Under the pieces are notes generated by a model. That model was not told the origin of the DNA. It searched no databases and was given only the letters and a program-made list of their open reading frames with translations. From Anthoceros angustus (Eukaryota > Plantae > Anthocerotophyta), in NCBI GenBank assembly GCA_010909165.1, contig MU008188.1:723766-787765 (forward strand): DNA of 64,000 nucleotides, given 5' to 3'. A program made the position numbers and the translations under genes. This document shows, piece by piece, positions 497 to 49,190 of this stretch; the first letter of the stretch is position 1, and every line of letters begins with the position of its first letter.

Positions 497-1817
497 ACAA
501 CATAGTTTTCAGTTCATTGTTACATGGGCGGCCCACGTCACTGTCGTTCATCTCAACATCCAAGCCATGGACTTCAATGTCCCGAACCACTGGCTGGCTG
601 ATTGTACAACAAAAAAACTTGATCAAGTAGGACCTATAGTTTCAACCTACCTACTCTAAATCGGAGGAATATGAAGTGGGCTCATTGCGACTCATGAGCG
701 CTGAGCCGTCACGACATTATGCTGTGATGTCCAGCAGAACATTGCTTGTGATCGTTCCGTCTCTCTTAAATCCATTGTTTTCTTCCAGGGCTCTGTCGTA
801 CTCGTCTCCTCGCTGGACTCCACCCCAGTGATTGCTCCCAAAACATTCAAAGTCTGCTGTCCACGTCTAAAGCTCTCCAGATTGTTCTCATCATTCTTTT
901 TCGCGATGAGGGGAACCACTAAAACCATCCTTCTCAACATACTCTTCGCCCAAAGGGAGGGGCCTCTCAGGTATCAGTGAGCTCTTCTTTGCGTGCAGTA
1001 GGACCTCGTGCCCATGGATGCGTTGCGAATATAGCACGCACACCTCAAGTCGCCTCGATGGCGTCTGGTGGCGTCCATAAAGCAAAATTTGCCAAAATGG
1101 TTGTCCAGCTCCACGAGCATGCTCCGTGGCCAGGTCTTCCTGTGAAAATGTCTTTATGAGCTTCATCATAGGCCAGGAGGCCTTTAGTGCAGACATACCA
1201 CCGAGCATCGTTAGAAGGTAAACACGCTTTTCACCACGTGTCATACTTACCAACCTCCCGTTGTTAAACATTAATCCATGGCATTCGGCATCATCGTGGC
1301 CCTATCCTTGGAACACCGTCCTTCACACCACCCTCGATCACGTACTCCACGGTTTCAAACCCTCCTTTGTCATTGCTCATGTTTGTCTTGGCATACAAAT
1401 GAACCATACCTCCTTTCACTGCACCACTTCCTCATGGGCTCTCTATGTGTGGGCTTCCTCCACACACCATGCATACTTGATAATCCGATACTCTTAGCAT
1501 GTAGTTTTCTCCCAAAGCTGGAACCTGTACTCATACTTGTGATGTCCATCCTTTTGTCCATAGATCCTATATCAAAACCTCGGGGACATCCATGATCAAC
1601 AGGGCATAGTTTCGTCCTCTCAAATACCCCGCATATCCATTTTGGTTTTCGACGATGCCCTGTTTATTATACATGTTGGGACATTGAATCTGAAAAGCGG
1701 CTTCGGATCTTTGTCGGCCAAATCTCTTTGCTCATTCTCAAGTCCTTCAATTGTTCACTTGAATATAAAATGTTGGAAATCTCTGCGCTTTGTGTGAGGT
1801 TGTCCACATCCTTGATT
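497..1817 (-). pseudogene. C-terminal part of ParB-MTase gene: beta-class N4-cytosine/N6-adenine DNA methyltransferase domain (PF01555-like) plus acidic tail
   Basis: Read across frameshifts in beta-class order. Motif IV-like GRNYALLIMDVP-x-GFD (~1570-1615); YAKTNM..GFETVEYVIEG (~1330-1400); MMKLIKTFSQE-D..GAG/TTILAN/LLYGRH../AIE (motif I, ~1050-1170). Acceptor CAAG| at 1818. The 3' end at 497 is approximate. Confidence 0.72.
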
Positions 1818-1865
1818 CTTGCGTGAAACACAAGGGAATTAGAACGCACGCCGTCACGTTCGGGT

Positions 1866-1885
1866 AGAGGCGGCCGGCGCCCTCC
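1866..1885. repeat. Degenerate GC palindrome (AGAGGCGG|CCGGCGCCCTC); left inversion breakpoint
   Basis: Same core as 2897-2952; coding strand switches at this point. Confidence 0.7.
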
Positions 1886-1900
1886 TCTTGTTGAGAACAG

Positions 1901-2836
1901 CCCAAGGGCGTGGGGTTATGGGGCCGCGAGTTTTACCCCTGCTGTGCATGATTGATCCGACGGAATGCCCTGAGCTCGCCAGCCTGGACTGGAAGAAATT
2001 CAGGGCAAAGACATATGTCATGGGTGTCCTGGGTGGGAACCACACATATGCAGCCATGAAACATTTGGCAGACATCTCACCTGGGAAAAAACGCTTCCAA
2101 TATGTGGAGACACATGTGTACTGTGGCCTCACTGTGCAGGAGATGAGAGTACTCGCAACCGATCACAACATTATGTCGGACAAGCGGAGGAAGATGTCTT
2201 TTATAGAGCAAGTCAGGTACCTCAGGGATGAACTATTGATTGCGAAACGCGAAGGGGTACAAATGACGATGACTTGGAAATTCAACTTCTATAAGGTTCT
2301 GAACTTATTAAGGATGATGAGGCCCGTAACGACGATGTGTACAAACAAAACAAGGTGGACAACAGGACTCATATCTTATGCATAGCGAAGCAGGAGGGCA
2401 AAGTGTGGGAGAATATAGACAAGATCTTCTCAAAGTGGGAAGCTGGTGACCTGCCAGAGTAGAAGAGGCACAGCGCAGTGGGCACAAACAAGAAGGGAAA
2501 AGGGAAACGGAAGGTGACCGAAGAGTCGAAGAAAGTGGATGCAACATATGTGAAGCCGGAGGACATGTTGGCGAAGCCATGGAAGTCGTTTCAAGGTATT
2601 CCAGCGGGTGATTATGGTCAGCAGATTCTCATATCCGCTACGGAGAAGGTTCTGGCAGGCCTAATAGATTTGAAAGGGATGGATGACGACATTACCTTGC
2701 GAAAGAAATTCCATGTCATCCAAGTTGCTATGGCCAAACACTTGGGATGCTCATCGTTCGAGGAAGTCGGCTAGAATATCCACATCACTCCACTGACGAA
2801 ATGCTAGCTCGGTTTCAGACTCAATTCGCGGGAAAG
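1901..2836 (+). pseudogene. Inverted middle exon of ParB-MTase gene: ParB/Srx-like core and helical region
   Basis: GVMGPRVLPLLCMIDP...VLGGNHTYAAMKHL...VYCGLTVQEMRVLATDHN...MSFIEQVRYLRDEL (GNH motif of the ParB/Srx fold). Continues WENIDKIFSKWE...TQFAGK then donor GTATGG at 2837; acceptor AACAG| at 1900. Confidence 0.75.
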
Positions 2837-2896
2837 GTATGGGGGTGTCAGTTGTGCTTTGTGTTTTCCTCTGCTTGGTATGCAAATGTTTTGGGC

Positions 2897-2952
2897 AATC
2901 GGAATGGTAGGAGGGAGGGCGCCGGCCGGCGCCCCTCCCTACCATTCCGATT
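2897..2952. repeat. 56-bp near-perfect palindrome AATCGGAATGGTAG..GGCGCCGG|CCGGCGCC..CTACCATTCCGATT; right inversion breakpoint
   Basis: Arms read directly from the sequence; centre at 2925/2926. Both arms lie just inside GT-started introns pointing towards each other. Confidence 0.9.
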
Positions 2953-2979
2953 CTTGAGACACGGAATGGGCGGTCTCAC

Positions 2980-3876
2980 CCGTGCCAAATAGTTCGTCCA
3001 TGCTTCATCCACCCTTCTTATCTGAGCGTCAGGTGTTAGGTGCGACGCAGGACGTAAATTCTCCAACTTCACAAGAACTGTCTCAGGCACAACCTTCTTG
3101 GCGTAGGCAGATTCCCTGATGCGTGTCGGCGGGTCCTCATCCCGGATAGCGTCTTCCAGTCTTCCCTCGTATGTCGTGACATGAACCGTGCGGATGTCAA
3201 GCGACACTGCTCCCTCGGCTGTGCCAGCTTTGCGCCTCTTTCCCCTTTTCCCTGTCTCTAGTTCTTCGCCCGCGTCATGACGCCACCACTAGGATCATGG
3301 CGGCACTCCGCTTCCCAAGACAATAAACGGAGGCCCGGCGGAAGGCGCTGCCCTCCGGCCCCTTCATCGTCATTCACGGGCTGTATGGCCAGCTCCTCAC
3401 CTGTTTCGGGCCTACCTGTCGAGGCTGACGCTGGGGCGCCTGCCGGCCGGCACCCCAACCCATCTGCGGCATTTGGGAACTGGACAAACCAGTTCGGATT
3501 GGGTGTCACCATGTCCTGGACACCTCTTCCCTGCTGGAGGGCGCCGGCCGGCCGGTGCCCTGATCCTGATTGAGGATCATATCTAGCTGTCGGGACCTCC
3601 ATGGACTGCCCAGGCATATTGTAGTCGAACATGATGCACGTCCACTTTGCTCTACAGGCATAAGACTCTTCCAAATCATCATCCAGAACATCGAGAATCG
3701 ACCCATCGTCCTCATCTTCTGGACCCAATTCACTCCCTTCAGGGCTGGGTGCCTCCTCCTCATGCTCTTGGTGGTGAGCAGTACTCCGTCTCAACGCCAT
3801 AACCCTCGTGCTCCGGCCTGGGCATGTAATCTTCGCTTTTACGGAGGCGGATAAAAGCTCTTCCTACTTGAGTAGC
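2980..3876 (-). pseudogene. N-terminal part of ParB-MTase gene: acidic region and first ParB strand/helix
   Basis: VLVKLENLRPASHLTPDAQIRRVDEAWTNYLAR then donor GTGAGA (2979), resembling the ParB N-terminus (I..LRP...QPR..DE..L..L). Acceptor TTTTGCAG near 3877; upstream acidic EHEEE..EDEDD stretch. Confidence 0.6.
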
Positions 3877-4049: not shown

Positions 4050-7000
4050 TGTGGAACGAAGAATTTTGGTCACCCCAGACGCGGAAGGGGGAGGCCCGGC
4101 GTAGGATGGGTTGTCAGTAGGTGGGAAGTAGGTAGGACGATGAGAGCAGTGGGAAGGTGGTCGGACGTCCAGGGGAAGTTCGGGGTTTGAGTGGTCAGTG
4201 AACTCGTGGGAGGATCGATACGGTAGGAAGCATGGGTAGATAGGAGCATATATAGGCATGATAGGTTCGAGTTCCTTGGACCATGGAATATTCGGGGATA
4301 AGAAGTTCCTTGAATTATTTAGATCGCATGGCTATATATGCCAAAGAAAGCTAAGTTGTAAATAGAAAATAGCTACGGGAGTTTTGCCGGACACGTGGCG
4401 ACCATCGAGGAGGCGCCATTAAGCGGTTGCATGTACACCAAATCACAGTTAGCAGTTTGAGTGGCGTTTTCGGCGTGACTGGCGGGATGGCGGCCGAAGA
4501 GTAAGGAGCTTACGCTCGAGGCGGGCGACTTGAGGCGATTACAGCGCGTGTCGGAGGGCCTGGAGGCGACAAGGGAGGCGGCAGGCGCAGCCGCGCAAGG
4601 AGAGAAGCGAAGGAGCGCATGCTGCTGAACAGTGTCTTGGTGAGAAGCTGAAGAGAGTCGGAGAGGGTCCAGAGGGCGTGGAGATGCTCAAGCGGAGGTG
4701 GGGAGGCGTGTTGGCGAAGGAAGAGCTTGGGCGTGAGGCAGCGGGTGGAGAAGCTGGAGGGAGATTGAAGGGCCAAGGCCACCTCTTGGCGGTTGTGTGG
4801 AGGCGGGTTGGAGGCACGGAAGTTTTCCCCTTGTCATCTCACCCAAACCACCACTTCTTTGCTCACCACTCTCTTAGCACGATAGATTACTCTCCAATCT
4901 CTCAATTTTGCTATCCTTGTGTGCTCCCACATGCGGATGGTGAAGATAGTGAGGATGGGATACTCCAGGAGGAAACCTCCAGCCACCACACAAGGGAAAG
5001 GAAGAAACACCCAATTCCAGGAGTTCGAGTGTAGGCGCTCCAAATTTCACCTCGAGATTTGGAGGCGTTAGGCTATCTGAGATGAAGATGGAATGGCTGT
5101 ACTTGGTGCACAGGTGGCACTTCGAGCCACCTTGGTTCGGGGTGTCTTGTGACAGATGAGAGTGACCAAGGCGGACGGCCAGCGGAGGATCTGACGGTCA
5201 AAGTCATCACAGGATGTGGAAGGTGCGACATTTCGGGATCGTGCGATCTAGGAAGCCCACAAGGGAGGGATCATTCCGGTATTCGATTCTCCAAGAATCG
5301 GATCCGGAGGAGGTTATGGTATGTTCCTCGACCAAAGGAGGAAGTATGGTCGCAAGGCAATGGGTGGAGGATCTCTAGCAAGGAAGTGGAATTTATTCGC
5401 CAAGATATGGCTAGGACGTCTTGTGGCGAGGAAGGCGTGCACAGGAAATTCCATTTAATGATGATGTATGAGATGTCTCGGAAGTTGGTGGATTGGGCCA
5501 CCATTACGTATGAACAGCGGTTGCGAACCATTTGGTGATGGAGGGAGCAAGAATCGGTTTGTCTCTACCTTCCTCGTACACCTATATCGGAGGAGGAGGT
5601 TCTTACTGACTGGAAGAAGCCAAGATAGAAGCTACTCAGTGAGGGTAGTGGAAGGGAGCCATCGCGGCCCGGAGAGGATGAAAGCAGGCGGAGGCCCCGG
5701 GTAGAGGCCACCACCACCCATGAATGATGGCTTCGGGATCGAGAACCCAGAGAAAGGGAAAGGGCCATGAAGCACCTCCTACGGAGGAAGGAGGAAAGAT
5801 CTGAGACCACCTACGGAGGTTGAGGATTGGTGCCAACAACACGGTGGTAGGGAGTGAACCCCCTGGTGGGACCCGGGAGGATGGAGGACCTACGGTGAGC
5901 TTCCTCCTACCAAAGAGGTAATGTAACGACTTGTTAGCTGATGGAGGCGGGTGGCGGAGCGCCGAGGCGTTGGTGACCTCACACACGCAGGAGGAGGCGA
6001 TGGGAAGTGTTTGAGCGGTAGGCATCCTCTGAGTGATTCTTGGTGAAGGAAGTGGGCAGGATCTATGGACGCCCTAGTGGACCCGTGTCGGGAGGTGGCG
6101 AGAGTTCGTCTTGAACTTGAGACCTCTGAGGAGGGGAGGATCAGGAAATTGAGGAGCTCGAAAACCACCTCAGAAAGCAACACTCCGTGCTAGATCGGCC
6201 AAGGCGGCGGGATGACCAAGTTGGTGAATGTGTGGAAATGATTGACCCGGGTCTTAGGCGGGAGGCAAAATCAGCCAAGAGGGCTGGAGTTAGGCGCCGG
6301 GAAGGAGGCGGAAGAAAAATTGGAAGCTAGCAAGGGTAGGAGGCATCGAGCAGCGAGGAGGAGGCGGCATCTAGAGGCCAATGGGACCTTGAAGACGAGA
6401 AGGACCTCCTACGAAAGAAGTTAGTCGCCATGGAGCAACGGAAGGAGCATTACAAGGGAAAATATGACAGCTTGGAGAAAGAACGACAAGGATGGGACAA
6501 TGTGACCAAGGGTCACAAAGAGGAGCTTCGTATTACGAGAGAACTTTTGGAGCAGCAACGCAAGAAGGCCGACGATCTTACCCACGCCTATGAGACGGAG
6601 GCAAGGAACTACCGGAAGGAAGTTTTAATGGCCCAACGATCTTTGGAAGGTCTGCAGGTCATTCGAGGGGAGCAGGCGAGGGCGACTGCGGCCATAGTAA
6701 AACGCATGGCGATGGAAGCCATGGAGAAGGATAAGGAGATTGGGAGACTTGCCCTGGAGTTGGAGGGAGCGGTAGTGGAGACAAAGGCCGCATTGGTAGG
6801 AGTGACAAATCAAAGCCGGTGGGACGAAAAGGCCATCCCACTAAGGGTCCGTGATCATGGACGACAAAAGAAGGAGAGTAGTAGGGTGGCGACCTATTAC
6901 AACAACCTCCTAGAAGCGATTGAGGAACGCCACAAAGGAGGACGATTAAGAAACAGACCTCACCGCCCCGACAGCGGAATGGCACCGGAGGTCAAAACTT

Positions 7001-8331
7001 TGAGTGTACAAGGAAAGGCAGTGGCGGACACAAACAAGCAAGTCAAGAAGCACCACGGCGACGCCAAGAGACCTCCGAGACGGTGGAGTCATAGGAAAAA
7101 GATGGTAGGATGGTACCAAAGTTCCTACTGTAGGAACTGCTGATGAGGAGGAGGACCTCAAGGAGGGTACCTCCTACGGTGAAACCCAGCCGTGGAGGGA
7201 AGGAACCCCATGGAGATCCGAAAGGTAGGAGACGAACCGCCTACCAAGAAGACGAAGATGAGGGGAGGAACCCATCGAGGATGAACGAGGAGGAATGGAA
7301 CCTCCTACCATGGAGGACCTACCAGAGGGGCCGAGGTAGAGCATACCAGTAGTCCCGAGAAGACTCTCGAGGAGGCAAGGCTAAGCGACCCATCAAGGGA
7401 AGACATTGAAGCCGCGAGGCGAATAAGAAAGAACGAGGATGTCAGAGGACCTTTTCTATAGGACGTTTTGTCCCAAGTGGTACACCTTGGGAAGTGTGAG
7501 TATTTAAGAGTGGCGGCAAGATAGACAGATAGGATATTCGTCAAGGTGAGCCGGACCGAGCCGAGAGGATGAACCAAGGGATAAGGATCCTATTGTTGGA
7601 CTTGGCAAGTCGCCTAGCATTAAACTAGCACGAGTGACCAATGACTCCCCACCTATAAAGGGAGGGTGGAAGATGAATAAACACCGCTTGCTTTGCACTT
7701 TCTTTCCTGCCATCCCTAGCTGACCGCCAAGCCGACGAGAAGGCTAAGGGTGGGGTTCTCGAGGCCCCTCGCTGGGGTTCGCCAACGCAGTTCCTCCTCG
7801 GAAAGATTGCTGGATATGCTTTGTGTTGTTGCTGGCCTCGCAGGGATCGGCGCCGACTACGCCGCGCTGTGTTTGTACACGCAATCGCCCGAGAGAAATA
7901 CCCGCCACGCCACCCTGTGCGCTTGTGTCGCAAGGAGGCGCAACCGCTAACGCTACGGTAGAGTTAGATTTGGGATCGAATGAAGTGAGTTTCATGTGTG
8001 TGGATTTGAACTATGTTTTGAGAATGGTGAAGAGGTTGGCAATGGTGATGTGTCGTTGTAGAGTGAGTTGATTAGAAGGGCAGGAGAGTGTTGGGGATAA
8101 GAAGGAAATCGAAGGCGTGGAGCGGGCCAGTAACCTGAACGATAACACCCGCTTGTTGCCCATCCGAGGACAAGTAGACCGGCTGAACGATGAGGAGTGA
8201 GAGAGTGAGAGGAACGACCGCAAAAACAATGCCCAAACCAAATCTCTTGGGATCTGTAACCTACGTGACCAACGCATCCGTGATAAGTGTACACCGAGGC
8301 GGCGCCTCCGGGTGACCGGAAACCGTCTACA
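4050..8331 (+). mobile_element. Solo giant LTR, family A (Ty3/gypsy-type, ~4.28 kb) containing an accessory ORF
   Basis: Starts TGTGGAACG, ends CTACA; TATA at 7654. GATAAGTGT motif near the 3' end is shared with family C. Degenerate TSD ACCAT/A-ACTAT. No PBS or PPT. Confidence 0.72.
5081..7143 (+). pseudogene. LTR-borne accessory ORF (plant mobile-domain-like region plus coiled coil), frameshifted
   Basis: GNGWRIS...VDWATITYEQ...VSTFLVHLY matches family C KN-W...PDWGLIMYEAY...LSTYLVHLW; coiled coil at 6430-7143. Confidence 0.6.
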
Positions 8332-10768: not shown

Positions 10769-13700
10769 TGTGGACTACGACTCTCGTTAAGAAATAAGTA
10801 GGGCTTTGTTTTTTTGTAGGAGCCGATGGCGATACAAATATGTTGAAAAAGGGGGGGATAATAAGCACGATTTGACAGATTGGGGATCGTGACCCGAGTA
10901 TACTCCCATCCCGGATCGGGCAACGACTTTGACCTACTATGACAGCGCCTTACCGCTAAACGGGATACAAGTCCTGACTCACCCCAGTCCAAAGGTGATA
11001 AGTACACCGGAAAGTAACTTAAGTGAGCCGCGAGGACGGACTCAGGCGCGCTTACGCGGACGCCCCGGTGGAGGTCGCATGCAAACAAGCCGTGAGCTCG
11101 CCGGGCCGCGGCAGCAGTGTATTCACGCCCGCGACCCGCGCCAGAAGGCCGAGCACGGCAGCAGAAGCGCCGTAGTGTGAGGCGCAAGGTCGCAATGCCA
11201 TGCACTCCTCGCGGATGTGAAGAGGCGCCTTCCGCCTATATTCCAAGGCGCGTCAAGGGAAGGTCACTTTACCGCGCAGCCTCGAGATACCCCGCGCCTC
11301 GCCCGCAACCCGCTCGGGCGCTATCTCTTTGAGCGCCCCAAAGATTTCGGTTGTAGTCCACGGGTCGGGGTTGGAGAACAACGCGCGAGGAGGGCGATCG
11401 TGCCAAAGGAACTCCGCCAGCCTGCCGAAAAAGGAGACGAGGCGGCGGCACCCAAAAGCTCGGAAGTTTGGGAGCCATGGAACCGTGGAGCGCAACATTG
11501 TGACTCCGGGCGCTATCCGACTTTGGGCCGGCCGAGGAAGGGAGAAGGCAGGAGTGGCACGGATGCGCTAGACGGTCTCGACGCTCGGCCATACCTGGGT
11601 CCGGAGTTCACCGGAAGATGTTGGCGGTCAACAAGGAGGTGCGGTCCAAGAACCTCCGGAGGACCCATGGCGGACCTTGAGGTCCCGGGAGGCGCCTACA
11701 ACCGCCCAAAGGAGGAAGAAGGGGAGCGCTGCCCCTCAAGGCGGGAAGATAGGGCCGGGCCGAGGCCTCGACGCAGAGGACCACCAACGGTGGCCGATAT
11801 CCGACCCACCGGGATGAGTAGCGGTAGCCCTTGATCATTGTCCATTGATCCGCCACCAAGGTGGATCACCTTGGATAACCTCACAGTATTCTCGCATGCG
11901 CTACAATGGGGAAGAGGCGGACTGGGAAGGATTATCTCTGCTTAGCTGGGAGGCCCGCAAGCTCAGACCGAGAAGCCTCGCTGGCCGCCCTACCGATCCA
12001 TGTATGGGGACATTTCAGCCTCAAGGAGGGAGAGCTGAGCGGGCGCCCGAAAGGACCGAGGCCCCGCCGAAGTGGAGCGGGCGCCCGAGGTGGAGGCCGA
12101 CCCAAGGCCAAACGACCCGGGAGGAGGACGATCGGGAGGGAATTCCGACCCATACGCCCTGAACGGACCCCTCACCACCTGTGGAAGTATGGGAAGAAAT
12201 CCCCGCTTCCTCCTCGGTGCCCCAACCGAGCAGCCCAAAGCAGGCTGACCCAGCCCCGCCACCACCACATAACCATACCATGGAGCCCGCCTGACTGTGA
12301 GGGAACCAAGAGACGCAAGACCCTACTAACGCTGCACCTCGGGACCAAGATTCTTACCCCCGCCTACGGGAGTGGCAAGAAGCAGGCTGTGAAGGAGGAG
12401 GGCAGAGGACGCCTCAGTGAGCAGGAGGACACTGCAGCAGCCTGCACTCGAGCCGGCCCCTGCCGCCGATGTGAAGGGGCAAAAGGGCTTGCTCCCGACT
12501 CCTCACCTCCTCCGAGCCCTGAGAAAAGGGGAGAAGGAGCTCGGGGCTAAGGAGGGTGAAGCCCGGAAGCCAAAGACTCGTGACCTAAGGGTCCCGATTA
12601 GGTCCGGAGAACCCAACCGACTTACTCCGACAATGTATGGAGGTCTCGGATCGGAAACGCCGCCCCGCCACTGACTTTGTGGGAGCTCTCAGCGGCACCG
12701 GAAGAAACATGGCGGTTCCGCTAACATCAGATGCTTTGGGGTCTCATGAAGACCGGAAGGTAGAAGCCACCCGAGGCATGGTACTCCTCCGAGCAGCTTG
12801 AGGGGCCCAGAGGCAAGAAGGAAGGCCAAGCCCTACGGATTGAGGAAGGAAACGCCGAGGCGAGAGGGAGGTCCGTCCATCCGCAAGGATGACTAAATTC
12901 CTTCACCGGAGGAGCAAGGAAGCTAAGGAGGCCCAAGCGGCCGAGGACCTCGCAGCAGAGGGGTAGTGCACAGAAGGCAAGAGGCCCGGCGCGAGCGGGC
13001 GCGGACTCAAGTGAGGCACCAGACTGCAAGCTCGGAGAGGCTCGTGAAGGTGGCCAAGGAGGCTGAAGCACCGATCGCCATCACTACTCCATGGATCGGA
13101 ACCGGTGGAGGGAGGAGAGCCACAACCGGCCGAGCAGCAAGGAGAGCAAGCACGACGAGCCGTGTAACACTGAGGCCAAGACCCGGAAATCGGGACCAGG
13201 CGGAAATGGGCAGGAGGTAGAAGGGAGGCGGCAGAGTCGAGGACAAGAAGGACACCTTGGAGTTACAACCCAAGACGCTGGGCTGAGCAGCAAGGGGTTC
13301 TCAACGAGAATCCAAGACTTTGAGCTGAGATAGAGGCGCCCACCGCCTCAAGATGAGCAGAGGTGGTGAGGGCGCGACCACCAAAGCCTGTGAAGTTCGC
13401 GATAAGGAGATGGAGGATCTCCTGACTCAGCCCGTGAGGTGGAGCAGTGGAGATGGAAGACCGCAGGAGACTTTGAGCAGCCCAAACTACCATTGAGAGG
13501 AATGGTAGTCATAGGTCGCGAACGCGAAAATAGAGCGGCTGAGCTGGCATATGGACGGAGTCAAGAGACGGCGATGGAACAGGAGCAGGACGCCGCCGAG
13601 ATGGAGAAGGGCCTGGAGCCTGCACCGCAGAGCTGCCCACCGTCTGAGAGGGAGATGGCGAGCAATGTCTGAATGGACAAAGAGGCGAGCCGGAAGTGCA

Positions 13701-15246
13701 TAAGAAGCCGGTCCACCTTGAGGAAGGCGGAAGGCGGGCGGGCAAGCCGCGCAACTGGCCAAGGGAGTTGGAGCAGTGGAGCAACAATGACGCTGGAGGT
13801 GACCGAGGCACCTGGGCGAGAAGGCATTCAGCCTTATCAAACTCGGAGGTGGACCAATGCGGCAAAGACGCCACCCGAGCACCTATGGCGAAGGGAGACG
13901 GTGCCCGGCACACGTGAAGAGGCAATCCAACAAGTGGATTCTGGACTTTGCCTATTACTACCGAGCCCTGCAGAGAGGCCTCATCAGAAATGCACCCGAC
14001 CTGAAGGCCTGGAGGGGAAGAAGGCACGGGGACAAAGACAGTGGACTCCTAGGGCCCTGCTTGAGACGACGCAATGGGGAGAAGAGCCTCAAGAGGAGCG
14101 GGACGAACCCCCTGAGGTAAGTTCACCGCAACCCGCCTCAGAGAAGGGAGGACGGGCCCGAAGGGTGCGGAGGAGCCAACCCACCCAAGACAAGGGCCTG
14201 GGTAGGGAGGAGGACCTAGCAAGACGAGGTCCACAAGGGGTCCGGAGCTTGGGGACCGGAATAAGTTCGGACCGAGGTCCGAACCTCAGAGACCAGGCCG
14301 GACCCACCGGACCTGGGAAATAAGCCGACCCTGAGTTCAGACGAGTCGAGACCTGACTCGAGGTCCTGCCCAAAGAAGTGAGGAGCCCCTTCGACTTACG
14401 CTGGGGAGCATAGTGGCCCCACCGGAGGGGACCCACGGGAGGCTGGGAGGATGACGCCGCGGCACGGGTCATCACGCCACGAGCCCAACCCGACAGTGAT
14501 TCCGGAGAGAGGAGGTCTACCGCTGATCATCCGATTGCGCCAGAATCGTCGGGAGATTGACCACCAATCCCAAGGCGAACCTGACCTTCCTACCCCACCG
14601 CCGAAGGGGAGAGAATAGGGGTGGCGGCCGACAGGTATACCGAAATGGCCATCACCGTAATAGGGGTGTAATAAAGACGCCGACTGGGCGTAGTATAAGA
14701 GGGTCATCAATAAATCATCTTTCTTGGTGTTGATGCTGCTTGCGACAATTTTGTGTGTCTTCTGCTAACGTGAGTCCCGAGTCACCGAGCAGCAATGGCG
14801 AGAGATTGACTGGGTCCCGTGACGACTCCAACGTTGTGGTGGTGTGTGAGGGTGGGACCTGCGGCTCGGGCCCCGCCCAGCCGGGCCGAATCGGACCGAA
14901 CGCAGAGGAGGGACTCGGGGCGGCAGAGCCCTGGACGGAGAGGCCCCAGAGAACGACCTGAGGAGGTCCTGATCAAGGCCTTTTCCCTAAGACCGATAAG
15001 GTGTAGTGGGAGGGAGAGAGGAACGACGAGGTGGAGTGACTTAACGTGAACGAAACGACGCGAACGTCTCTAAACGCTTGGCCATACCGGCCCGGCGTGA
15101 TTTGTCAGGTAGTTAGACGAATCGAGAATGTGCGCTGGAACTAAAGTAAGACGAGATCGCTAAACAGAACGGAGTCCTATTCCTTTGGGAACGACTCTTC
15201 CTACAACGACACGGGATTGTGTACCAACAAAAGTGCCGCCGCCACA
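10769..15246 (+). mobile_element. Solo giant LTR, family B copy 1 (4478 bp) containing an accessory ORF
   Basis: TGTGG...CCACA termini; perfect TSD TGGTT (10764-10768, 15247-15251); TATA at 14694; colinear with 16596-20912. Confidence 0.9.
11440..14320 (+). pseudogene. LTR-borne accessory ORF of family B copy 1, frameshifted
   Basis: EPWNRGAQHCD...DHL..NLTVFSHALQW.EEADWEGLSLLSWEARKL...LPIHVWGHF, then a Glu/Arg-rich coiled-coil region. End is approximate. Confidence 0.5.
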
Positions 15247-15251
15247 TGGTT

Positions 15252-16595
15252 CCTGTTACAGTAATCACCGCTATCAAATGCTGTTTACGGCATTTAGAAG
15301 AGAAAGTTTTACCCATCAGTCACAAAAGGTATGAGGGAATTAAAGAGTGGTGGTCAGTCCTAATGCACCAGCGGGACTGTCAAGCTTGAAGGCCAACCCT
15401 ATATGTAAGACCCACGCACGCAGAAAGGGGCCAGTAGCTTGGCCGGACTGTTTTTTAAGATGGGCGTAGTAGAGGTCAGCCGACGTGGAGGTCTTCAATC
15501 TTCCGACACATACACGGGTTGAGATATGGCTCAAAGATAATACAATGTGAGATATTCATGTACATGGGTTTGTAGAATATACGCCATGCCGTTCCCAAAT
15601 TGTGGAAAACATACTCAAAGCAGAAAGTGAAGATAATCAAGTCCAATCGATTAACGTGGCTTCTCACCGGCCAGTTGAAAGCAACAATACGGAATACTCA
15701 CCTCCAAAGAGGATCATGGCGCTTGAACCGCAATAAACCTTCCTCTTTCTAGAATACCGCCGCTAAGGAAGGGGACTCAGACCGGCGGGCGCGATTCGAA
15801 GGGTTGGTCAGGGTTGGTGTCTGCAGGTGGAGGATAAGGAACTGAGTTCATTACCGATAGTATCGTACCGTTCAACATCCTCCCTGCAGATGCACTTTCT
15901 TATATCATCGTCTGCTGTATGTGGTGTTGGGGTTCCACATTTACCGATGACGCGGTAACTTGATGTGGTTGTATGAGGGCGTGAGGGCGCCGGCCGGTTT
16001 CCTACCTGCGTTAACAATTCATCCAAGACACTTGGTTTGATGTCAAAGTGCCATCCTCATCAAAGTCGCCTTTCAATGAGTTTGCTGGAAGAAAGTTCAA
16101 TCGATGCGAGATTGCCTCAGATCTGTGGGCCTCGCTGTGGCAGCCTGTTTAGGAAGCTGAAAAGGCCAAACGCTTAATATCTTTATCCTATGTTGTTTGC
16201 AGAGGAAGTACCAGGCACATAGAGCGCCTATATGCAGAAGGCAAAGATGCTAAACACCAAGATTACGTTGAACCGCAAGTATATATGTTATTATCTATTG
16301 ATGATATGGAGATGTAAATACCCCATTTTTGGGTGGCTAAGAACCAGAAGAGGAAAGTCAATTTCGGGCCCATGTTGTGGGTGCTTATTTTACAACTAAG
16401 CGTGATAAACCGTGATTTTCACATGCATTATGCTAACTTCGAGATGATGCCTTGACCGGGGTTCGCAAAGTTTTATACTTGCAGGTTGGACAACATGCGG
16501 GAGGATAAGAACCAATATTATTGTATGACTTAAATATGCTTGTGGACATGGGGACTTTCCAGAAAGTGAAGGTGGGCTTCCTACTAGTTGGGCAC
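15252..16595 (+). pseudogene. DUF7869/Sola-like transposase, part 2 (zinc-binding region and first two catalytic Asp)
   Basis: C..RCGSLFRKL, YQAHRA..Y, YMLLSIDDME..PHF, VLYLQ/LDN..xNKNQY, MLVDMGTFQKVKVGFLLVGH at 16130-16595. 15400-16080 is not assignable. Confidence 0.72.
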
Positions 16596-19500
16596 TGTGG
16601 ACTATGGACTTCCCTTGGGGGGTAGGAATTAAGTAGGGCTTTGTTTTTTTTGGTAGGTTGGAATAGTAAAATAAGGCGGAAAAGGAGGAATAAGCACGGA
16701 TGGCGCCTCCTGACCGACCGAGTATACCCGACTCGGAGTGGGCAACGACTCAACCACTATGGCGAAGCCCGACTACGCTAACGGATAAGTCCGACCCCAC
16801 CCGGTCAAAACAGATAAGTACGCCAGGAAAGTAACTTAGAAGTTGAGTCGTGAGGATGCATCGGCCGCCACGTGGACGGCCCCGAGTGGAGGTCGGGCAT
16901 GCAGCAGTGCCAGACGAGCTGTGGGCCGCAGGTATTCACGCCCGGACCGCGCGGCGCACAGAAGGCCGTAGCACGGCGTAAGGCCGAGGCGGAGGCGTAA
17001 GGTCGAGTAAGCCATGCACTGCGCTACGTGTGGAAGAGGCGCCTTCCCGCCTGCCTTACTTCCCACGCGGCCGAAGAGGGTCATTTCACGGCACCGACAA
17101 TTTCGCAGCCTCGCGCCCGCAACCCGCCTCGGCGCTATCTCTTTGAGCGCCCAGCATCTCGAGCGGCTCACCGCCGGGTTGGAGCAGCCGAACGCGAAGA
17201 GGGCGATCGCGCCGACTCCGCCGCCAGCCTACAAAGAACAAGGGAGAAGAAGGCGATGGCACCCAAAAAGGTCATGGAGGTCCGGGAGCCATGGAACCGT
17301 AGAGCGCAACATTGTGACCCGCGCTATCCGGACTTTGGGCCCCGCCGAGGAAGCGGGGAATTAGTCGAGGAGTGGCACTAGATGTGTTCCAGTCTCGACG
17401 CTTGACAACACTCCGTCCGGAGTTCGCTCAAGATGTTGGCGGCGGCCAACAAGGAGGTTCGTCCAAGAACCTCCGGGAGGATCCTAGGCGATGGACCTTG
17501 AGGTCCCGAGGGCGCCTACAACCGCCCAAAGGAGGAAGATGGGGCGAGTCCCGCAGCCCTCAAGGCGGGAAAGATAGGGCCAAGAATGGGCGCGCCGAGG
17601 CTCGAACGCAGGACAACCAACGGCGGTTGATATCGCACGACGCCGATAAGGGGGTCAGAGCCCGATCATTGTCCATTGAACTCGCCACCAAGGTGGATCA
17701 CCTTGGTGATAATTTGGTGTTCCCGCATGCGCACTGGGAAAGAGGGCGGACTGGGAAGGATTATCTTCGCCTGCTCACAGAGGCCCGCAAGCCGAGGAGC
17801 GAGAAGCCTCGCTCTGATCCCCATACCCGATCCATGTATGGGGACATGAGCTCAAGGAGGGAGAGATCGAGCGCCCCAAGAGGCCGGCGAGCGTGCAAGG
17901 GCGCCCGAGGTGGGGGCCACCCCTAAGGCCAAACGACCCGGAGGAGGACGACCGGAGGGATTCCGACCCATACGCCCGAACGGACCCCTCACCACCTGTG
18001 GAAGTATGGAAGAAATCCCCGCCTCTTCTCCCGGTGCCTCCTCCGAGCAACAACGCAGCAGAGGGAACGACGGAGCGAGTTGGCGGCAGCCCCAGAGCTC
18101 ACCCAAGAATCAGCCGAGCCCGACGACTCGGGCGGAACCAAGAGGCGCAAGACGCACCAACGCAAAGACTCGTGACGGTCTCTCCCCCGCCCACGAGTGG
18201 CAAGAGGTCAAGAGGCGTAAGGAGGGCGTAGCGCAGGAGCAGAGGTCACCGGCAGCCTGCACTCGAGCCTGCCCCCGGCTGTGAAGGGGCAAGGGCTAGC
18301 CCCGACCCCTCACCCTCCGAGCCCTGTGACTAAGAGGGCAAATAGGAATGCCAAGAGGGCCAAGGAGGGTGAAGCTCCGAGCCAAGACTCAGACCTAAGG
18401 GTCCCGATTAGGTCCGAGAACCCAGACCCGACTCCGGATCTGGTATGGAGGTCCTTGGCGGACCGTGAAATGCCCGCCTCCCACTACGGACTTTGTGGGG
18501 TCTCACTAAGGCCGTGGAAGAAACACGGCATGGTCCTACGCCATGGACGATGCTTTGGGGTCTCGGAGCCGAGAAGACCTGGAGGTAGAAGCCACCCGAG
18601 GGATGGTGCTCCTCCGTGAGCAGCTGGAGGGGCCCAGGAGGCAAGGAGGAAGGCTCCCGCATCGAGGAAGGGAAACGCAGGAGGCCGAGAGGGAAGTCCG
18701 TCCATCCGACAGACGACTAAATTCCTTCACCGGGTGAGCACGTGCATGTGAGGCCCAAGCACGGTCAAGACCTCGCAGCGGAGGGGAGTAGCGCAGCAGG
18801 AGGCGAGGAGGCCCGCAAGTGAGAAGGCTCGTGACCGGGCGAGGCGGCCTGACCGACCAGCGCCAAATGGGGCGAAGTGAAGGCGAGGGAGGCGTCACCG
18901 CTAAGATCGACCGCGATCACTATCGGCGTGATCGGAACCGTGGAGGGAGACGGCAGGATAGCCGCTAACTCAAGAAGGAGCAGGAGGCGGCGAGCACGGG
19001 CCACCCATGCCGAGGAGGAAGCACGCAAGGAGATGGAGGATCTCCTCCGCATGTGAGGTGGAGCGCCAAGGTGAGAGATGGAAGACCGCAAGAGAGTCAT
19101 AGCCCAAGTTACCATTGAGAGGAATGAATGCAGGCGTGATCGCGATCACGAACGAGAAATAGAGCGGCTCCTGCTGGGACGGAGGAAGTACGGCGATGGA
19201 ACAGGAGCGTGACGCCGCCAAATGGAGAAGGACTGGAGGCCCGCACGGGCAGAGTTGCCCGACCCTGGAGAGGGAGATGGAGTTAACACGAATGAACGAG
19301 GAGCGAGAGCACCGGACGCAAAGAAGCCGCCGTCCGGAAGGCGAAGGAGCGCCGCGCTATGGTAAGCTAGCAGAGCAAACGACGGAGCCGGAGCAAAGTG
19401 AGCAACAGCAGTGAGGTGACCGAGGCGCCTTGTAGCCTCGCATGACGGCCTCCCACAAACCCGGCAGGGAGGTGGTCCAACAAGCCGGGCAAGAGACGCC

Positions 19501-20912
19501 TCCGAACACCCATGGCGAAGGGAGACGGTGCTCCGCACACGTGGAAGAGGCACCAACAAGTTGATTGACTTTTGCCTATTACCACGCCGAGCTCCTTAAG
19601 ACATTGCCCTCCCGCCGCCCGCAAATAGACGGACCGGAAGGCCTGGGGGAAGGGCATGGGGACAAAGACGGGACTCTAGTGGCCCCGCTTGGAGACGAGG
19701 GGAGAGAAGTGAGGAGGACGCGCCAATACAACGAATCCTGTGGTAAGTCCGCCGCAACCCGCCGGAAGATAGAGGCGGGGCCTGAAGGAGGAGGAAGCCA
19801 AACCACCCAAGACAAGGGTCGGGATGAGGACCCAGCAAGAGGTCCGGGTAAGGGGTCCGGAGTTTGGACCGACTATTAATAAGTTCTGACCGAGGTCCGA
19901 ACCCCGAGATGAGACCGACCAGCAGACCTGACTCAGAAGGCGACTCCCGACCGAGTCGAGACCGACCTCGAGGTCCGACTCAGAAGCAAGGAGGAGTCCC
20001 TCCGACTTACGCTGGGGAGCATACAATGGGTCTTCTCGAGGGGACCCACCGGGGCTGGGGAACGACGTTGTGGTAACGGCGGCCGCCGCATCACGGTAGA
20101 GCCCAACCCGACAGTGATTCCGGAAGAGGAAGGGGTCCCCGCGATCATCCGATTGCGCCAGAACTGCCGTGCCGGAGATTGACCACCAATCCCGAGGCGG
20201 AACCCGGACCTTCCCAGCCCACCGACGAAGGAGATAGGAGGGGAGGAATAGGATGGTAGGCCGATTAGGGCATCGAAATGGCCACCCGTAATAGGGTGTA
20301 AAGGCGCCGACCGCGTAGTATAAGAGGGCCGAGGTCGCCTAAGTAAAGTCATCTTCTCTTGGTGTTGATGCCGCTTCGCACCCTTGTGCGCCTTCTTGCT
20401 AACGTGAGTCCCGAGTCATCGAAAGGTGCACACCCGAGAGACCGATCAAGGTTCCGTGACTGACTAACGGTGGTGGTGTGCAGAAGGGTGACCGGGGACC
20501 CGTGTTCGTCTGTAGGGCCGCCCAACACGAACGGGACCGAATGTGTGAGCTGGAGGAACCCGGAGGGCGTGTAGAGCCCGGAGAGGCCCGAACGATGAGG
20601 AGGTCCTGACCGTAGCCCCGCTTTTCCCTAAGACCGATGAGTGTAGCGTGAGTGGAGAGAGAACGGACTAGAGGTGTAAGTGACGAACGTGAACGTATAC
20701 TTGGACGCCAACGGGTCCTTAAACGTTTGGCCACACCGCCTCGGTGAAGCGCTGGTGGTAGTTAGGCAAGGAATGTGCGTTGGAGTTTGAACGGACGCAG
20801 CGAAGTGAGAATCGTCAACGCGCAAGCAGACTATCATTCCCCTTGGGAACCGGGACTCCTTCCATAACGACCTGATTGTCATGCGCATTTGGCCGTCCCG
20901 AAGTCGCGCACA
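16596..20912 (+). mobile_element. Solo giant LTR, family B copy 2 (~4.3 kb), inserted inside the transposase GH|TH motif
   Basis: Starts TGTGGAC right after GGGCAC; TATA at 20319; colinear with copy 1. Right end is noisy and duplicated (second end near 22191, followed by AGCAC resembling TSD GGCAC). Confidence 0.8.
17257..19900 (+). pseudogene. LTR-borne accessory ORF of family B copy 2 (starts MAPKK), frameshifted
   Basis: MAPKKVMEVREPWNRRAQHCDPRYPDFGP...KVDHLGDNLVFPHA; coiled coil MEQERDAAKW..EREMELTRMNEER. End is approximate. Confidence 0.5.
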
Positions 20913-22790
20913 GTAATAATACGATCGTATTGATCGATGTTTTCGTGTTTCACAAAACATTGAAACACAAGGAAGCACACATTGATGAGTTGACCCATAT
21001 TCTTGTTGGTGCGCATACACTCCCACACCAAGTGAAACCGCTGACTAAGTTGCAAATTTTGGACATGTGTGGCCTATTCAAGAGGGGAAGGTCAAATGTA
21101 TACCGCCGTAAGGAGACTAAACAATCTATCGCTCCAGCACCACCAAGATAACTCGGAGGAAAACAAGACAGAGGGCTAGTCACCGTAATCCAAGCAAGAT
21201 TCAACGCCGCCTCATTGGGAAATGTTCGTGGTTAGAGTTCAAGTTCGCCCCATTGATGCCATTATCGCAAAGACCGATGATGGCATTGCGGGCGAGGGAC
21301 AAGAAGGGCCGATCCGGGTTAAGGCCAATCAAGGAGTCGCCATTTGAAAGCCGGGCTTCGCTTTGAGGTCAGATGAGACAACATGAGCAACGTGTGGGAA
21401 GCTCGAAGGACCAAGAGGAGATTGTCCGCCATTGTGGAAAATAATATCCGATTAGGTGCCGCAAGCTCGAGGAGATTGGACCACCAATCCGTGAACCCGG
21501 ACCTTCCCCACGAGCGAAGGAGATAGGAGGAGGAATAGGATGGTAGGCGATTAGGGCGTCTTGGTGCCACCGGCTCGAATAGGGTGTAATAAAGGCGCCG
21601 ACCTTGCGTAGTATAAGAGTGAAATTGCTCTAAGTAAAGTATCTTTCTCTTGGTGTTGATGCGCGTTTCTTGCGGACCCTTGTGCGTCTTCTTAACGTGA
21701 GTCTGAGTCAGCGAGCACGGCGGCCGGAGGCCCGATCAAGGTTACGGTGGACCCTAACGTGTGGTGGTGTGTGCGAGGGAAGGTGGCGGGGACCCGTGTT
21801 CGTCGAGCGGTGGCCCAGTCGAGCGGACGGGCAGTGTGAGCGGAGGACTCGGGAGGCGTGTAGAGCCGGACGGAGAGCCCGGCGAGCAGCGGAGGTCGGG
21901 ATGTAGCCCGCGTTTTCCCTAAGGCCCGATGAGTGTAGCGTGAGTGGAGAAGAGCGGACTAGAGGTGCAAGTGACGTCTGAGTCTGACGCGACGGGTCCT
22001 TAAACGTTTAGCCACACACTGTCACGGTGAAGCGTTGCGAGTAGTTAGGCGGCGGTGATGAATGTGCGTTGAGTGAGCAGACGCAAAGTGAAGTGAGAAT
22101 CGTCAACGGCAAGCGAACTATCATTCCCCAGGAGCGGACTCCTTCCTCTACGACACGGGATTGTCACCTGGCCCGTCCCGGTAGTCGCATACTGAGCACA
22201 TGATCAGATTGATCAGATGTTTTCGTGTTTCACGAAAACCTTGAAACACAAGGAAGCACACACATTGGATGAGTTGACCCATATTCTTGTTGGTGCGTAC
22301 ACTCCCACACTCGAAGTGAAACTGTTGACGGAAGTTGCAAATTTTCGGACATGTGTGTGGCCTATTCGAAGAGGGGAAGGTCGGCAAATGTATATCGCGG
22401 CGGTAAGGAGACTAAACGATCTATCGTTCCAGCACCAGTTCAAGATAACTCGGGAGGAAAAACAAGACAGAGGGCTAGTCACCGTAATCCGAAGCAAGCA
22501 GTATTCAACGTCGCCTCATTGGGAAACAGATTCAGGGTTAGAGTTCCTGAAGTTCGTCCCATTGGATGCCATTACTGCAGCACCGATGATGGCATTGCGG
22601 GCGAGGGACAAGAAGGGCTCCGATCCAGGGTTAAGGCTAACTGAAGGAGTCGCTCATTTGAAAGCTGGGCTTTCTGCTTTGAGGCCGTATGTGACAACAG
22701 TTGAGTACAACCAGTGGGAAGCTTTCTGGAAGGACCAAGAGGAGATTGCTGTCATTGTGGAAAATAATATCGGGTTAGCCTTGCAGGAAC
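20174..22790 (+). repeat. ~1.3-kb tandem duplication (LTR 3' end plus transposase segment); possibly an assembly artefact
   Basis: 20174-21470 repeats as 21471-22790; GGAGATTG lies at the junction; the copies differ mostly by small indels. Confidence 0.8.
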
Positions 22791-23100
22791 CATGGAAATG
22801 GTATTCCAGAACTAATGTAGAAGTGACAGCTTCACCTCTTCATGTCCCTGACGAAGCATTGCTAGAGGAAGCTTTGATGAGGGACCTACCACAGCGGGAT
22901 ATGTATTTGGGAGCATACCAAAATGTTGGTAAATAGGAGGAAATGGCTGCGAATGGGGATGTGAAATCAAGAAAGGATGGTTCATCGCAACACCATGCCA
23001 TACGTATACCTTGATCACAATGACCATTTTGGATAGGGAGGTAGCCGATGTCGATTGGTGCCCCACGCCCCACTTCTCGCCCATTGGTATAGAACCGAGG
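22200..23100 (+). pseudogene. DUF7869/Sola-like transposase, part 3 (third catalytic Asp and C-terminal domain)
   Basis: HDQIDQMFSCFTKTL completes GH-TH-D-x-ID-QMFS. 239-aa ORF 22217-22936; then EIKKGWFIA..PFWIG..HWY across frameshifts. Confidence 0.78.
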
Positions 23101-24485: not shown

Positions 24486-24585
24486 CTTGACTTGACTTGA
24501 CTTGACTTGACTTGACTTGACTTGACTTGACTTGACTTGACTTGACTTGACTTGACTTGACTTGACTTGACTTGACTTGACTTGA
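24486..24585. repeat. (CTTGA)20 pentanucleotide microsatellite
   Basis: Perfect tandem array. Confidence 0.97.
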
Positions 24586-24962
24586 TGCTGTAGCTATCAT
24601 GTCAAAGTGGAAACCTTCCTTTCATTTTCTTTGAGATACTAGATACGAGGAGGAGTCCGTATTATGTTCTTCAGGCCAAGGAGTAATAATCTTCGTCGCA
24701 TGTTTGAAGTGTGTATCCATATTACCTATGTCATGTGAGTCATAGCTACATCTATGTCGCCAGTAAATCTACCTCAAAGGAAAAGCTGTGAGTGGCATGA
24801 TTGTGAGAGCTTGCTAGGGATCATTAAAAACTCATCTTACATAGTTGGTTATATGGCTACACCTGAGTGATACATCTCATCATGTTTGTCTATGTTTGTT
24901 ATAAAAAAATTGACCAGAGGGCAGTCAGCATTTAAATATCATAAACTAGAATCTAACAAGAT

Positions 24963-24965
<3 letters not shown>

Positions 24966-25046
<81 letters not shown>
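24966..25046. repeat. (AAT)n microsatellite
   Basis: Perfect tandem array. Confidence 0.97.
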
Positions 25047-25047
<1 letters not shown>

Positions 25048-25399
25048 TAATATAAACTTTCTAGAAGACAAAAGTATTAGAATATCAGTCTAGTTAAGTT
25101 AGGCTAACCTTTTAAGAGTCACACCTTTTCGGTGACTATAAGAGATGTTGTAACCAAGTACAACAATCTAATCATTCTTACTTTCTCTCCTCATGTGTTA
25201 GCATCACACCCACTAATCTTATATGGTATCATAACAAGATACTCAATCCTGATGGCCAGATCTAATGCTCCCACCTCCTTAATTTTATGAACCCCCTCCA
25301 TATCTCGGATTTGATGGGCCGCTAGCCCTATCTTCTTTTAATGCCTCCAAGGATGGGAGAAAGGCATTTTGCCTTCTCTCTCCCTTGCCTTCTAGCCCC

Positions 25400-35659: not shown

Positions 35660-35933
35660 ACTTTAAACAATGGCTCTGCATGATAAGGTTGCAAGCGTGA
35701 GGAGCTGAGTATTGCTTGATCAGAGTGCATGTAGGGATCCATGATAGTACAGCACCTGGTTGCAACCTTGTTGTAGGTGCAGGCTGTAAGCATTGTGTGC
35801 GCAGTCAAGGCCGCCGCCGAGTATGTAGCCTGATTCCAAGGTATCACCTTCCCGCTGCTGTGCGCTAGAGAGCACAAAATTATAATTTATTGTTGCAACA
35901 CTAGGCCCGGATCCTCCTCCCATAAGTGGTACT
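35660..35933 (-). pseudogene. Bulb-type lectin paralog; 5' end cut off by a giant LTR
   Basis: VPLMGGGSGPSVATINYNFVLSSAQQREGDTLESGYILGGG..NAYSLHLQQGCNQVLYYHGS; near-identical to 40-152. Confidence 0.68.
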
Positions 35934-48755: not shown

Positions 48756-48959
48756 TGGGAACGCAAAAGTTTGGGCAAATGTTTAAATGAGTTTGTTTTG
48801 GAACAGCCCACACTCTTTGCTAGAAATGGTTTGGTGAAGACATGCAAGGAAATTTTTGCCTTTTTGAGGAGTTGTAGGACCATGTCGGAAGGCAAAGGAT
48901 ATGCGAAAAGAAACGGGTCAAAACGACCTGGTGAGGAGAAAAGGTAACCTACATGAGTG

Positions 48960-49190
48960 GTAGGAGGTGTCCTACCACCGTAGGAGAAACTCCTACCATG
49001 GTAGACGAGGGTAGGAGAGATCCTACCACCGTAGGAGAAATGACCGCTAGTGTTTTGATCACCTACTGTAGGAATAGCTCCTACCATGGTAGGAGAGGGT
49101 AGGAGAGATCCTACCACCGTAGGAGAAACTCCTACCATGGTAGGAGAAAGGGAAAACGCCTACCATGGTAGGAGGATGTCCTACCAGGAG
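48960..49190. repeat. Array of CCTACCATGGTAGG palindromes and variants (also ~51070-51120, 52395-52470 and the 3' LTR equivalents)
   Basis: Perfect 14-bp palindrome at ~49080, 49131 and 49160 plus CCTACCACCGTAGG/CCTACCGTGGTAGG variants. Confidence 0.85.

Follow-up and report, generated by a model that had tools for sequence, protein, structure and literature searches.

A Decayed ParB-Methyltransferase Fusion Gene in Anthoceros angustus, Probably a Relic of a DUF7869-Type Transposon

Introduction

Does the locus at positions 497-3876 of a 64,000-nt stretch of the Anthoceros angustus genome (contig MU008188.1, positions 723,766-787,765; this whole stretch is called the window below) hold a hidden working gene of the plant, or the remains of a gene that belonged to a mobile element? 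An earlier note, made from the DNA letters of the window, had described here a cryptic minus-strand gene that becomes legible when the segment 1874-2925 is turned around and short GT-AG introns are removed. Its product was read as an acidic region followed by a ParB/sulfiredoxin (Srx)-like domain and then, after a helical linker, by a beta-class N4C/N6A methyltransferase, and the gene was regarded as a resident eukaryotic one. In this work we compared the locus with its relatives, among them the proteins P0002, P0031, P0042 and P0047 and the contigs L001, L002 and L003. L001 is a 3.3-kb Logan contig and the closest collinear relative found, and L003 is a metagenome contig.

The pieces named in the earlier note, that is, the acidic open reading frame (ORF), the ParB pieces, YALLIMDVP, YAKTN..VEYVI and KLIKTFSQED..GAG, were all located where it had placed them. 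Homology and collinearity support its view that they descend from a single minus-strand protein in which a helical linker joined a ParB/Srx-like domain to an amino-methyltransferase of PF01555 type. The proposal that this gene could still work did not survive the comparison: frameshifts and stops are numerous, and the copy is a pseudogene. We consider it quite probable that the locus is the decayed relic of an accessory gene of DUF7869-type (Sola1-like) cut-and-paste transposons, which occur in the green lineage and some algae.

Results

ParB-Like Core and Helical Linker

The plus strand carries an ORF at 1888-2385 (165 aa), which reads ..VLPLLCMIDP..VLGGNHTYAA..; further along the core, ..VYCGLT..DHN.. 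is found. A phmmer search of 1.8 billion representatives matched 49 proteins to this ORF, the best of them being Chara braunii GBG86584.1 (E 2.9e-20). According to tblastn and a hidden Markov model (HMM) of 11 full-length relatives, the homologous region covers 1843-2839 of the plus strand and is collinear with the relatives through the ParB-like core (1900-2232) and the helical linker (2244-2833). In a frameshift-tolerant profile alignment the plus-strand segment scored 169-193 bits vs about 16-23 bits for shuffles (z about 48-97). A profile search revealed that the family is multicopy in ferns, with 24 different proteins in Adiantum nelumboides and one in A. capillus-veneris. The proteins P0031, P0042 and P0047, as well as the C-terminus of L001, pass the Pfam threshold for PF01555 (N6_N4_Mtase).

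The ParB/Srx-like character of the core is supported as a fold by an intact relative. Sequence-level support for it was not obtained: the single ORF pieces of the window matched no Pfam family, ParBc included, the relatives gave no Pfam ParBc match, and a sequence search of the PDB with the ParB profile returned noise only. P0002, an intact relative that has the N-terminal strand and is 37% identical to the window ORF, gave a predicted structure with a pLDDT of 85. In a Foldseek search of the PDB with this structure, Noc, ParB, PadC, sulfiredoxin and KorB made up essentially all of the 50 hits listed, and the top hits had a probability of 1.0, E values from 3e-4 to 1e-2 and TM-scores of 0.4-0.68; the Swiss-Prot matches were Noc and ParB. 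The 165-aa window ORF, in which the N-terminal strand is lacking, was predicted with a pLDDT of 81 and showed a weak structural match to PadC (Z 4.1, VIA-align). Structure prediction thus supports a ParB/Srx fold in the family, and homology supports it in the window remnant. Bacterial ParB proteins carry the motif GERRxR at a position where sulfiredoxin has GGCHR. In the family this position, that of the arginine-rich motif of ParB, reads GGNH[ST], and the GERRxR motif responsible for CTP binding was not found.

Inversion of the Central Segment

The N-terminal piece of the ParB-like domain (..VLVKLENLRPAS..RRVDEAWTNYLAR) lies on the other strand, at 2980..3129 (minus), where tblastx with L001 and BLASTP with P0002 detected it; the surrounding minus-strand ORF 3207-2848 reads ..VLVKLENLRPAS..WTNYLAR. 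In L001 the region 1233-1376 corresponds to 3129..2986 on the minus strand of the window (tblastx, E 1.3e-4), and the region that directly follows it, 1413-2325, corresponds to 1930..2833 on the plus strand. Similarly, residues 51-98 of P0002 matched the minus-strand ORF (BLASTP, E 3e-4), while residues 109-235 matched the plus strand (E 1.9e-22). Both relatives switch strand at the same break, so the re-inversion of 1874-2925 introduced in the earlier note is indeed required. Since L001 and P0002 run straight from their minus-strand to their plus-strand matches, the segment 1874-2925 (1,052 bp) is, as judged by comparison with its kin, inverted relative to its flanks.

Both ends of the inverted segment are marked by a GC palindrome. 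The right junction, defined by repeat search and comparison of arms, is a 56-nt near-perfect hairpin (2897..2952) centred on GGGCGCCGGCCGGCGCCC, an exact 18-nt palindrome with a chance expectation of 0.02. At the left junction (1861..1885) repeat search and sequence context revealed an imperfect copy of the same palindrome, and the two junctions share a perfect 15-nt inverted repeat (1871-1885 / 2914-2928). With the segment turned back, a repeat of about 30 nt (AATCGGAATGGTAGG..GGGCGCCGGCCG) is present in two direct copies about 1 kb apart. It can be proposed that two such repeats ending in the palindrome GGGCGCCGGCCGGCGCCC would originally have lain at this distance within the gene, and that an exchange at their palindromic cores, by recombination or by template switching, would have turned round the intervening 1,052 bp. 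One resulting junction, the 56-nt hairpin, would then consist of two left arms and the other of two right arms. The locus thereby offers a clean example of a balanced inversion between two short GC palindrome copies inside a gene.

The most serious alternative concerns the inversion itself. It accepts that the gene is dead and transposon-derived, and supposes that the GC palindromes misled the assembly into the 1,052-bp inversion, the real gene being collinear on the minus strand. The breakpoints do lie exactly in palindromes, which are difficult to sequence and assemble, and the 1-nt frame changes packed into 1632-1017, one of them in a homopolymer, fit imperfect polishing. However, fold-backs in assemblies usually yield inverted duplications rather than a balanced inversion with both junctions, and the arrangement of two left arms and two right arms is the one expected from real recombination of two repeat copies. 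We regard an artefact as unlikely and retain the reading of a true inversion in a decayed transposon gene.

Palindromes related to that of the junctions were found at 3434-3455, 3539-3560 and 15985-16002, and the first 4.5 kb of the window contain 7 perfect palindromes of at least 12 nt vs 0.8 expected. Perfect palindromes CTCCTACCATGGTAGGAG (12-18 nt) recur at 49078-49172, 57741-57828 and 61075-61090. They sit in two 5-kb repeats (48763-53825 and 57434-62481, 90% identical), in which no similarity to ParB or DUF7869 was found, and have ..ATGGTAGGAG.. in common with the arms of the hairpin 2897-2952. The contig L002 contains its own, different GC palindrome (CATCCCGGACGTCCGGGATG) twice, at 16-35 and 141-158, upstream of its ParB-like gene. 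This difference is consistent with palindromes being element-specific.

Methyltransferase Remnant

On the minus strand downstream of the inverted segment, a spacer that separates the linker from the methyltransferase (LENEQR.., WPTKIRSR.., FQIQCPNMYNKQGIVE) occupies 1648..1742; it is collinear with L001 in frameshift-tolerant alignment and weak when taken alone. Further along this strand YALLIMDVP is found at about 1600, YAKTN..VEYVIEGG in 1419-1291 and KLIKTFSQED..GAG in 1271-891. On the METHYLTRANSFERASE side nothing significant was found by standard searches (tblastn with 49, then with 71 relatives; HMM of 11 full-length relatives), and 1843-2839 was the only region detected by tblastn or HMM with relatives. 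The first model, free-jump chaining, was replaced by a diagonal-consistent alignment in which frameshifts and unaligned stretches are allowed. When the re-inverted gene was aligned over its whole length, the alignment failed to extend across the unaligned spacers.

With the replacement model, profile positions 396-700 aligned to the minus strand of 400-1873 with 25.7 bits vs 16.2 +/- 1.9 bits for shuffles (0/400 shuffles, z 5.0); in an earlier run of this whole-domain test the opposite strand gave 19.6 bits, a value like those of shuffles. For the C-terminal half (profile positions 531-700 vs 400-1450) z was 5.2-6.7, and none of 300 shuffles reached the score under each of three parameter sets. 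The motif IV piece of L001 gave a z of 5.5 (0/200 shuffles). The alignment path starts with RNYALLIMDV / PRGFD at 1614-1571 and passes through VHLYAKTNMSNDKG (1404-1363) and TVEYVIEG (1353-1330), after which it follows RPPGL (1183-1169), MMKLIKTFS (1169-1143), TTILA (1122-1090), LLYGR (1085-1071) and AIEA (1062-1051) to its end at about 1017.

Three blocks can be distinguished along this path, all on the minus strand. The motif IV region, ..RNYALLIMDV / PRGFDIGSMDKRMD (1544..1632), is indicated by z values of 4.1-5.5 and by codon comparison with L001. The central block, GGMVHLYAKTNMSNDKG .. TVEYVIEG (1330..1413), belongs to a path with z 6.4-6.7 and fits the family consensus ..lvtwvKPNv.. and ..atEfcviG. 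The region of the QKP box and motif I, ..RPPGL MMKLIKTFS..(GAG)TTILA..LLYGR..AIEA (1017..1204), reached z 5.2 alone with default parameters (0/300 shuffles). Motif IV (1614-1571) thus precedes the motif I region (1122-1090), which is the beta-class order recognized in the earlier note. The distance from motif IV to motif I is 148 codons in the DNA vs 152 profile positions, so there is no space for introns in the domain.

With respect to PF01555, the pieces of the window have no Pfam match, and the remnant follows the profile of its relatives collinearly (z 5.0-6.7). Judged by these alignments, the remnant belongs to PF01555 through its ancestry and not through its present sequence. The family methyltransferase profile matched solved beta-class enzymes, namely 5hek (1.2e-10), M.RsrI (8e-7), CcrM (3e-5), the rotifer N4CMT (8s9m, 7e-5) and PvuII (0.015); the best-scoring of them are adenine enzymes, yet the target base is not decided thereby.

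The motif IV consensus of the family is [YF][TS]L.I.D.PYGF. In the window this motif is crossed by a frameshift at about 1585, which corresponds to the loss of 1 nt in a C run across the Val and Pro codons. The aromatic residue had been reported as unreadable at this point; in fact the downstream frame reads P-R-G-F-D, and the aromatic position is occupied by Arg (CGA). In L001 motif IV reads D-L-P-R-G-L-D with AGA as the Arg codon. The window thus has D-V-P-R where the wider family has D-x-P-Y, and the required aromatic residue is lacking, so that this copy, as far as its motifs can tell, should not be called an active methyltransferase. Because the two copies have the same residue encoded by different codons, CGA and AGA, it may be argued that Arg goes back to the ancestor they share and did not arise by random decay.

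State of the Copy

In comparison with L001, the ParB-like core and linker are broken by frameshifts near 2323 and 2770 and by an in-frame stop at 2460-2462. In the methyltransferase part (1632-1017) the frame changes about 8 times or more and a stop lies near 1186; its reading frame is not intact. An interruption of 80 nt follows ..YLAR and holds a palindrome; L001 and P0002 have no interruption at this position. Its length is not a multiple of 3 and both AG acceptors after ..YLAR are in the wrong phase, neither of them restoring the frame when checked by hand, so it is not demonstrable as an intron. A GT-AG intron of 80 nt at this site was accordingly rejected as unprovable, and the short introns proposed before lose their support here. 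It should be noted that L001 is itself interrupted by two frame changes and in-frame stops (at about 1490, 2400 and 2700) and may be another dead copy or unspliced DNA.

Upstream of the ParB-like domain, a 180-aa acidic ORF taken from the ORF list occupies 3258..3800 on the minus strand and includes the palindromes 3434-3455 and 3539-3560. It reads in another frame than the next piece, and no homology to the relatives was detectable in it, so its place in the gene was not confirmed. By its position and by the acidic N-termini of the relatives it may represent the N-terminal part of the gene, which is acidic and variable.

That the locus is a functional host gene with introns, its stops and frameshifts being spliced out or sequencing errors, appears highly improbable in the light of these data. 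This view could invoke a possible donor, AAG|GTATGG, after ..QFAGK, where two relatives diverge. Two of the frameshifts and a stop, however, lie inside stretches that are continuous in L001, and the methyltransferase part has about 8 or more frame changes within 600 nt while its 199 codons vs 204 profile positions leave no intron space. In addition, every GT-AG pair at the first junction leaves the reading out of frame, and the middle exon is on the opposite strand. That only the ParB-like segment is real, the minus-strand methyltransferase motifs being chance matches gathered from three frames, is scarcely credible: the absence of Pfam matches in single pieces, of anything significant outside 1843-2839 in tblastn with about 70 relatives, and a z of only 0.9-1.9 in free-jump chaining would suit it, but in the collinear model no shuffle reached the score (0/400, 0/300 in each of three settings, 0/200), the opposite strand scores like shuffles, and the DNA spacing from motif IV to motif I agrees with the family profile.

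Transposon Context

A fragment of a putative DUF7869-type transposase was detected at 22199..22912 (plus strand) by Pfam PF25273 (28.2 bits) and by tblastn to the transposase of L003 (E 1.6e-14), and a further small DUF7869 piece lies at 16515-16595 (tblastn, E 0.004). The fragment is located 18 kb upstream of the gene in divergent orientation, as on L003, where an intact ParB-methyltransferase gene is divergent from a 580-aa DUF7869 protein within 8.9 kb. The window begins about 500 nt past the 3' end of the gene, and the left end of the element may be outside it. The name Sola1 for this type of transposase comes from a published element (PMC12477816) and is applied here by analogy, the basis in the window being the Pfam DUF7869 match only.

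Between 3.9 and 22 kb, the ORFs showed no Pfam match and no similarity to L001, L002 or L003. Within a strongly purine-rich stretch (4-22 kb, plus strand) we found tandem duplications with 71-78% identity, 10788-15095 / 16623-20744 and 20174-21455 / 21471-22778, the latter pair duplicating part of the DUF7869 transposase region. A 237-aa ORF at 6430-7143 (plus), situated between the relic and the transposase fragment, is charged and coiled-coil-like and has no Pfam match. A 118-nt repeat (92% identity) is present at 37-154, just beyond the 3' end of the relic, and 36 kb off at 35816-35933. Elsewhere in the window there are pieces of Ty1/copia-type retrotransposons at 26895-27674 and 43018-43797 (both plus), with the domains RVT_2 (E 4e-53) and an integrase core plus retroviral SH3-like domain, as well as two microsatellites, a perfect (CTTGA)20 and (ATA)31, at 24486-24585 and 24961-25052.

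Discussion

The locus was taken in the earlier note for a resident eukaryotic gene, and three observations speak for a transposon accessory gene instead: the family is multicopy, as seen from the 24 proteins of Adiantum nelumboides; on L003 it is coupled with a DUF7869 transposase, of which type the window also holds a fragment; and the design as published is that of an accessory gene of a transposon (PMC12477816). The product of the intact gene would have an acidic N-terminus, then a ParB/Srx-fold domain, followed by a helical linker and, last, a DNA amino-methyltransferase of the beta class (PF01555). The literature suggests that the ParB-like domain of a working element would bind palindromes specific to that element, and that the methyltransferase would mark the DNA of the element itself with 6mA or 4mC. 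With frameshifts and stops throughout, the present copy would make no protein.

Several points weigh against this interpretation or parts of it. The 18 kb that separate the gene from the DUF7869 fragment are duplicated, unexplained sequence, and no terminal inverted repeats were found that would join the two into one copy of an element, so that this union is putative. The fold of the window remnant is assigned through P0002, a relative of 37% identity, and the predicted fold of the 165-aa window ORF itself gave no significant Foldseek match. The first model, free-jump chaining, did not separate the methyltransferase and N-terminal flanks from shuffles. The inversion and the 1-nt indels are known from the assembly alone, and some of them may be assembly errors. 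Finally, Arg in motif IV is seen in two copies only, those of the window and L001, both of which are damaged; a search with the L001 motif IV piece, restricted by a length filter, found no further D-x-P-R-G members.

The occurrence of Arg in place of the catalytic aromatic residue in two independent copies hints at a subfamily with altered or lost activity. Since Arg replaces a base-stacking aromatic residue, the D-[V/L]-P-R-G subfamily may perhaps be no conventional methyltransferase even when intact, so far as its sequence allows one to judge. A more speculative proposal, which we consider unlikely, combines these features: palindromes of the GGGCGCCGGCCGGCGCCC family in and around the gene could be parS-like sites of the element, to which its ParB-like domain would bind and which its methyltransferase would mark, and could serve as recombination hot spots, with the D-x-P-R-G subfamily as a land-plant lineage whose methyltransferase fold persists for binding and not for catalysis. 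If this were true, the palindromes could flip parts of elements, as in this copy.

By itself the locus matters little; it adds one dead copy to a type of transposon accessory gene already described in print for algae. It adds evidence for ParB-methyltransferase transposons with palindromes of their own in land-plant-type genomes. The whole family is relevant to the question of whether transposons in eukaryotes place 6mA or 4mC on DNA of their own.

Comparison With Known Systems

The solved beta-class enzymes (5hek/5hfj DpnA-type N6A, M.RsrI, M.MboIIA, CcrM and N4CMT 8s9m) share with the family the order motif IV, QKP, motif I, and the family profile matches them with E values from 1.2e-10 to 7e-5. 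Unlike the family, they are without the ParB-like domain and the helical linker. Furthermore, the first Pro of their (D/S/N)PP(Y/F/W) motif is replaced family-wide, and in the window and L001 the aromatic residue is changed to Arg. On the side of the ParB-like domain, bacterial ParB, Noc and KorB proteins and sulfiredoxin resemble the predicted N-terminal domain of P0002 in fold and in a conserved strand-GG-x-H-helix at the GERRxR / GGCHR position. They differ from it in that there is no sequence-level match, the arginine-rich CTP-binding motif is absent and the TM-scores are those given above.

Among plant proteins, the closest in type are those of ferns and Chara annotated as "DNA methylase N-4/N-6 domain-containing". 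Their core and linker are homologous to those of the window (32-42% identity in the parts that match, E down to 2.9e-20), and the methyltransferase remnant of the window follows their profile; in contrast to it, they have kept D-x-P-Y-G-F in motif IV, and several are intact and reach the PF01555 threshold. The Marchantia proteins MpDN4MT1a/b are also prokaryote-type beta-class amino-methyltransferases of a land plant. These sperm 4mC methyltransferases have TSPPY, the usual motif of N4C enzymes, and are encoded by expressed single-locus genes (bioRxiv 10.1101/2021.02.12.428880), whereas the window has D-V-P-R-G-F in a dead gene of transposon type; the comparison is one of motif and gene type. 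Kinship with MpDN4MT1 was rejected on account of the differing TSPPY motif and of the silence of that paper's text on ParB. MpDN4MT1 is a different lineage.

ParB-like domains are also present in mobile elements of eukaryotes. In the Bostrychia Plavaka elements such a domain is combined with an oxygenase, beside inverted-repeat arrays. Fusions similar to that of the window were described in eukaryotic mobile elements (Iyer, Abhiman and Aravind 2011, cited in PMC12477816), and the 21.5-kb element Sola1-1_Ec32 of Ectocarpus encodes a 1104-aa protein with ParB-like and N4C/N6A methyltransferase parts opposite its transposase (PMC12477816). In comparison with this element, by the published description of its protein, the differences are that its host is a brown alga and the genome here is land-plant-like, and that the window copy is dead, internally inverted, 18 kb away from the transposase fragment and equipped with Arg in motif IV. 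The similarities are that both have the same pair of domains in the same order, a ParB-like one followed by a PF01555-type methyltransferase; that the gene of L003 likewise stands opposite a transposase, of the type whose fragment is present in the window; and that palindromes occur in and beside the window gene.

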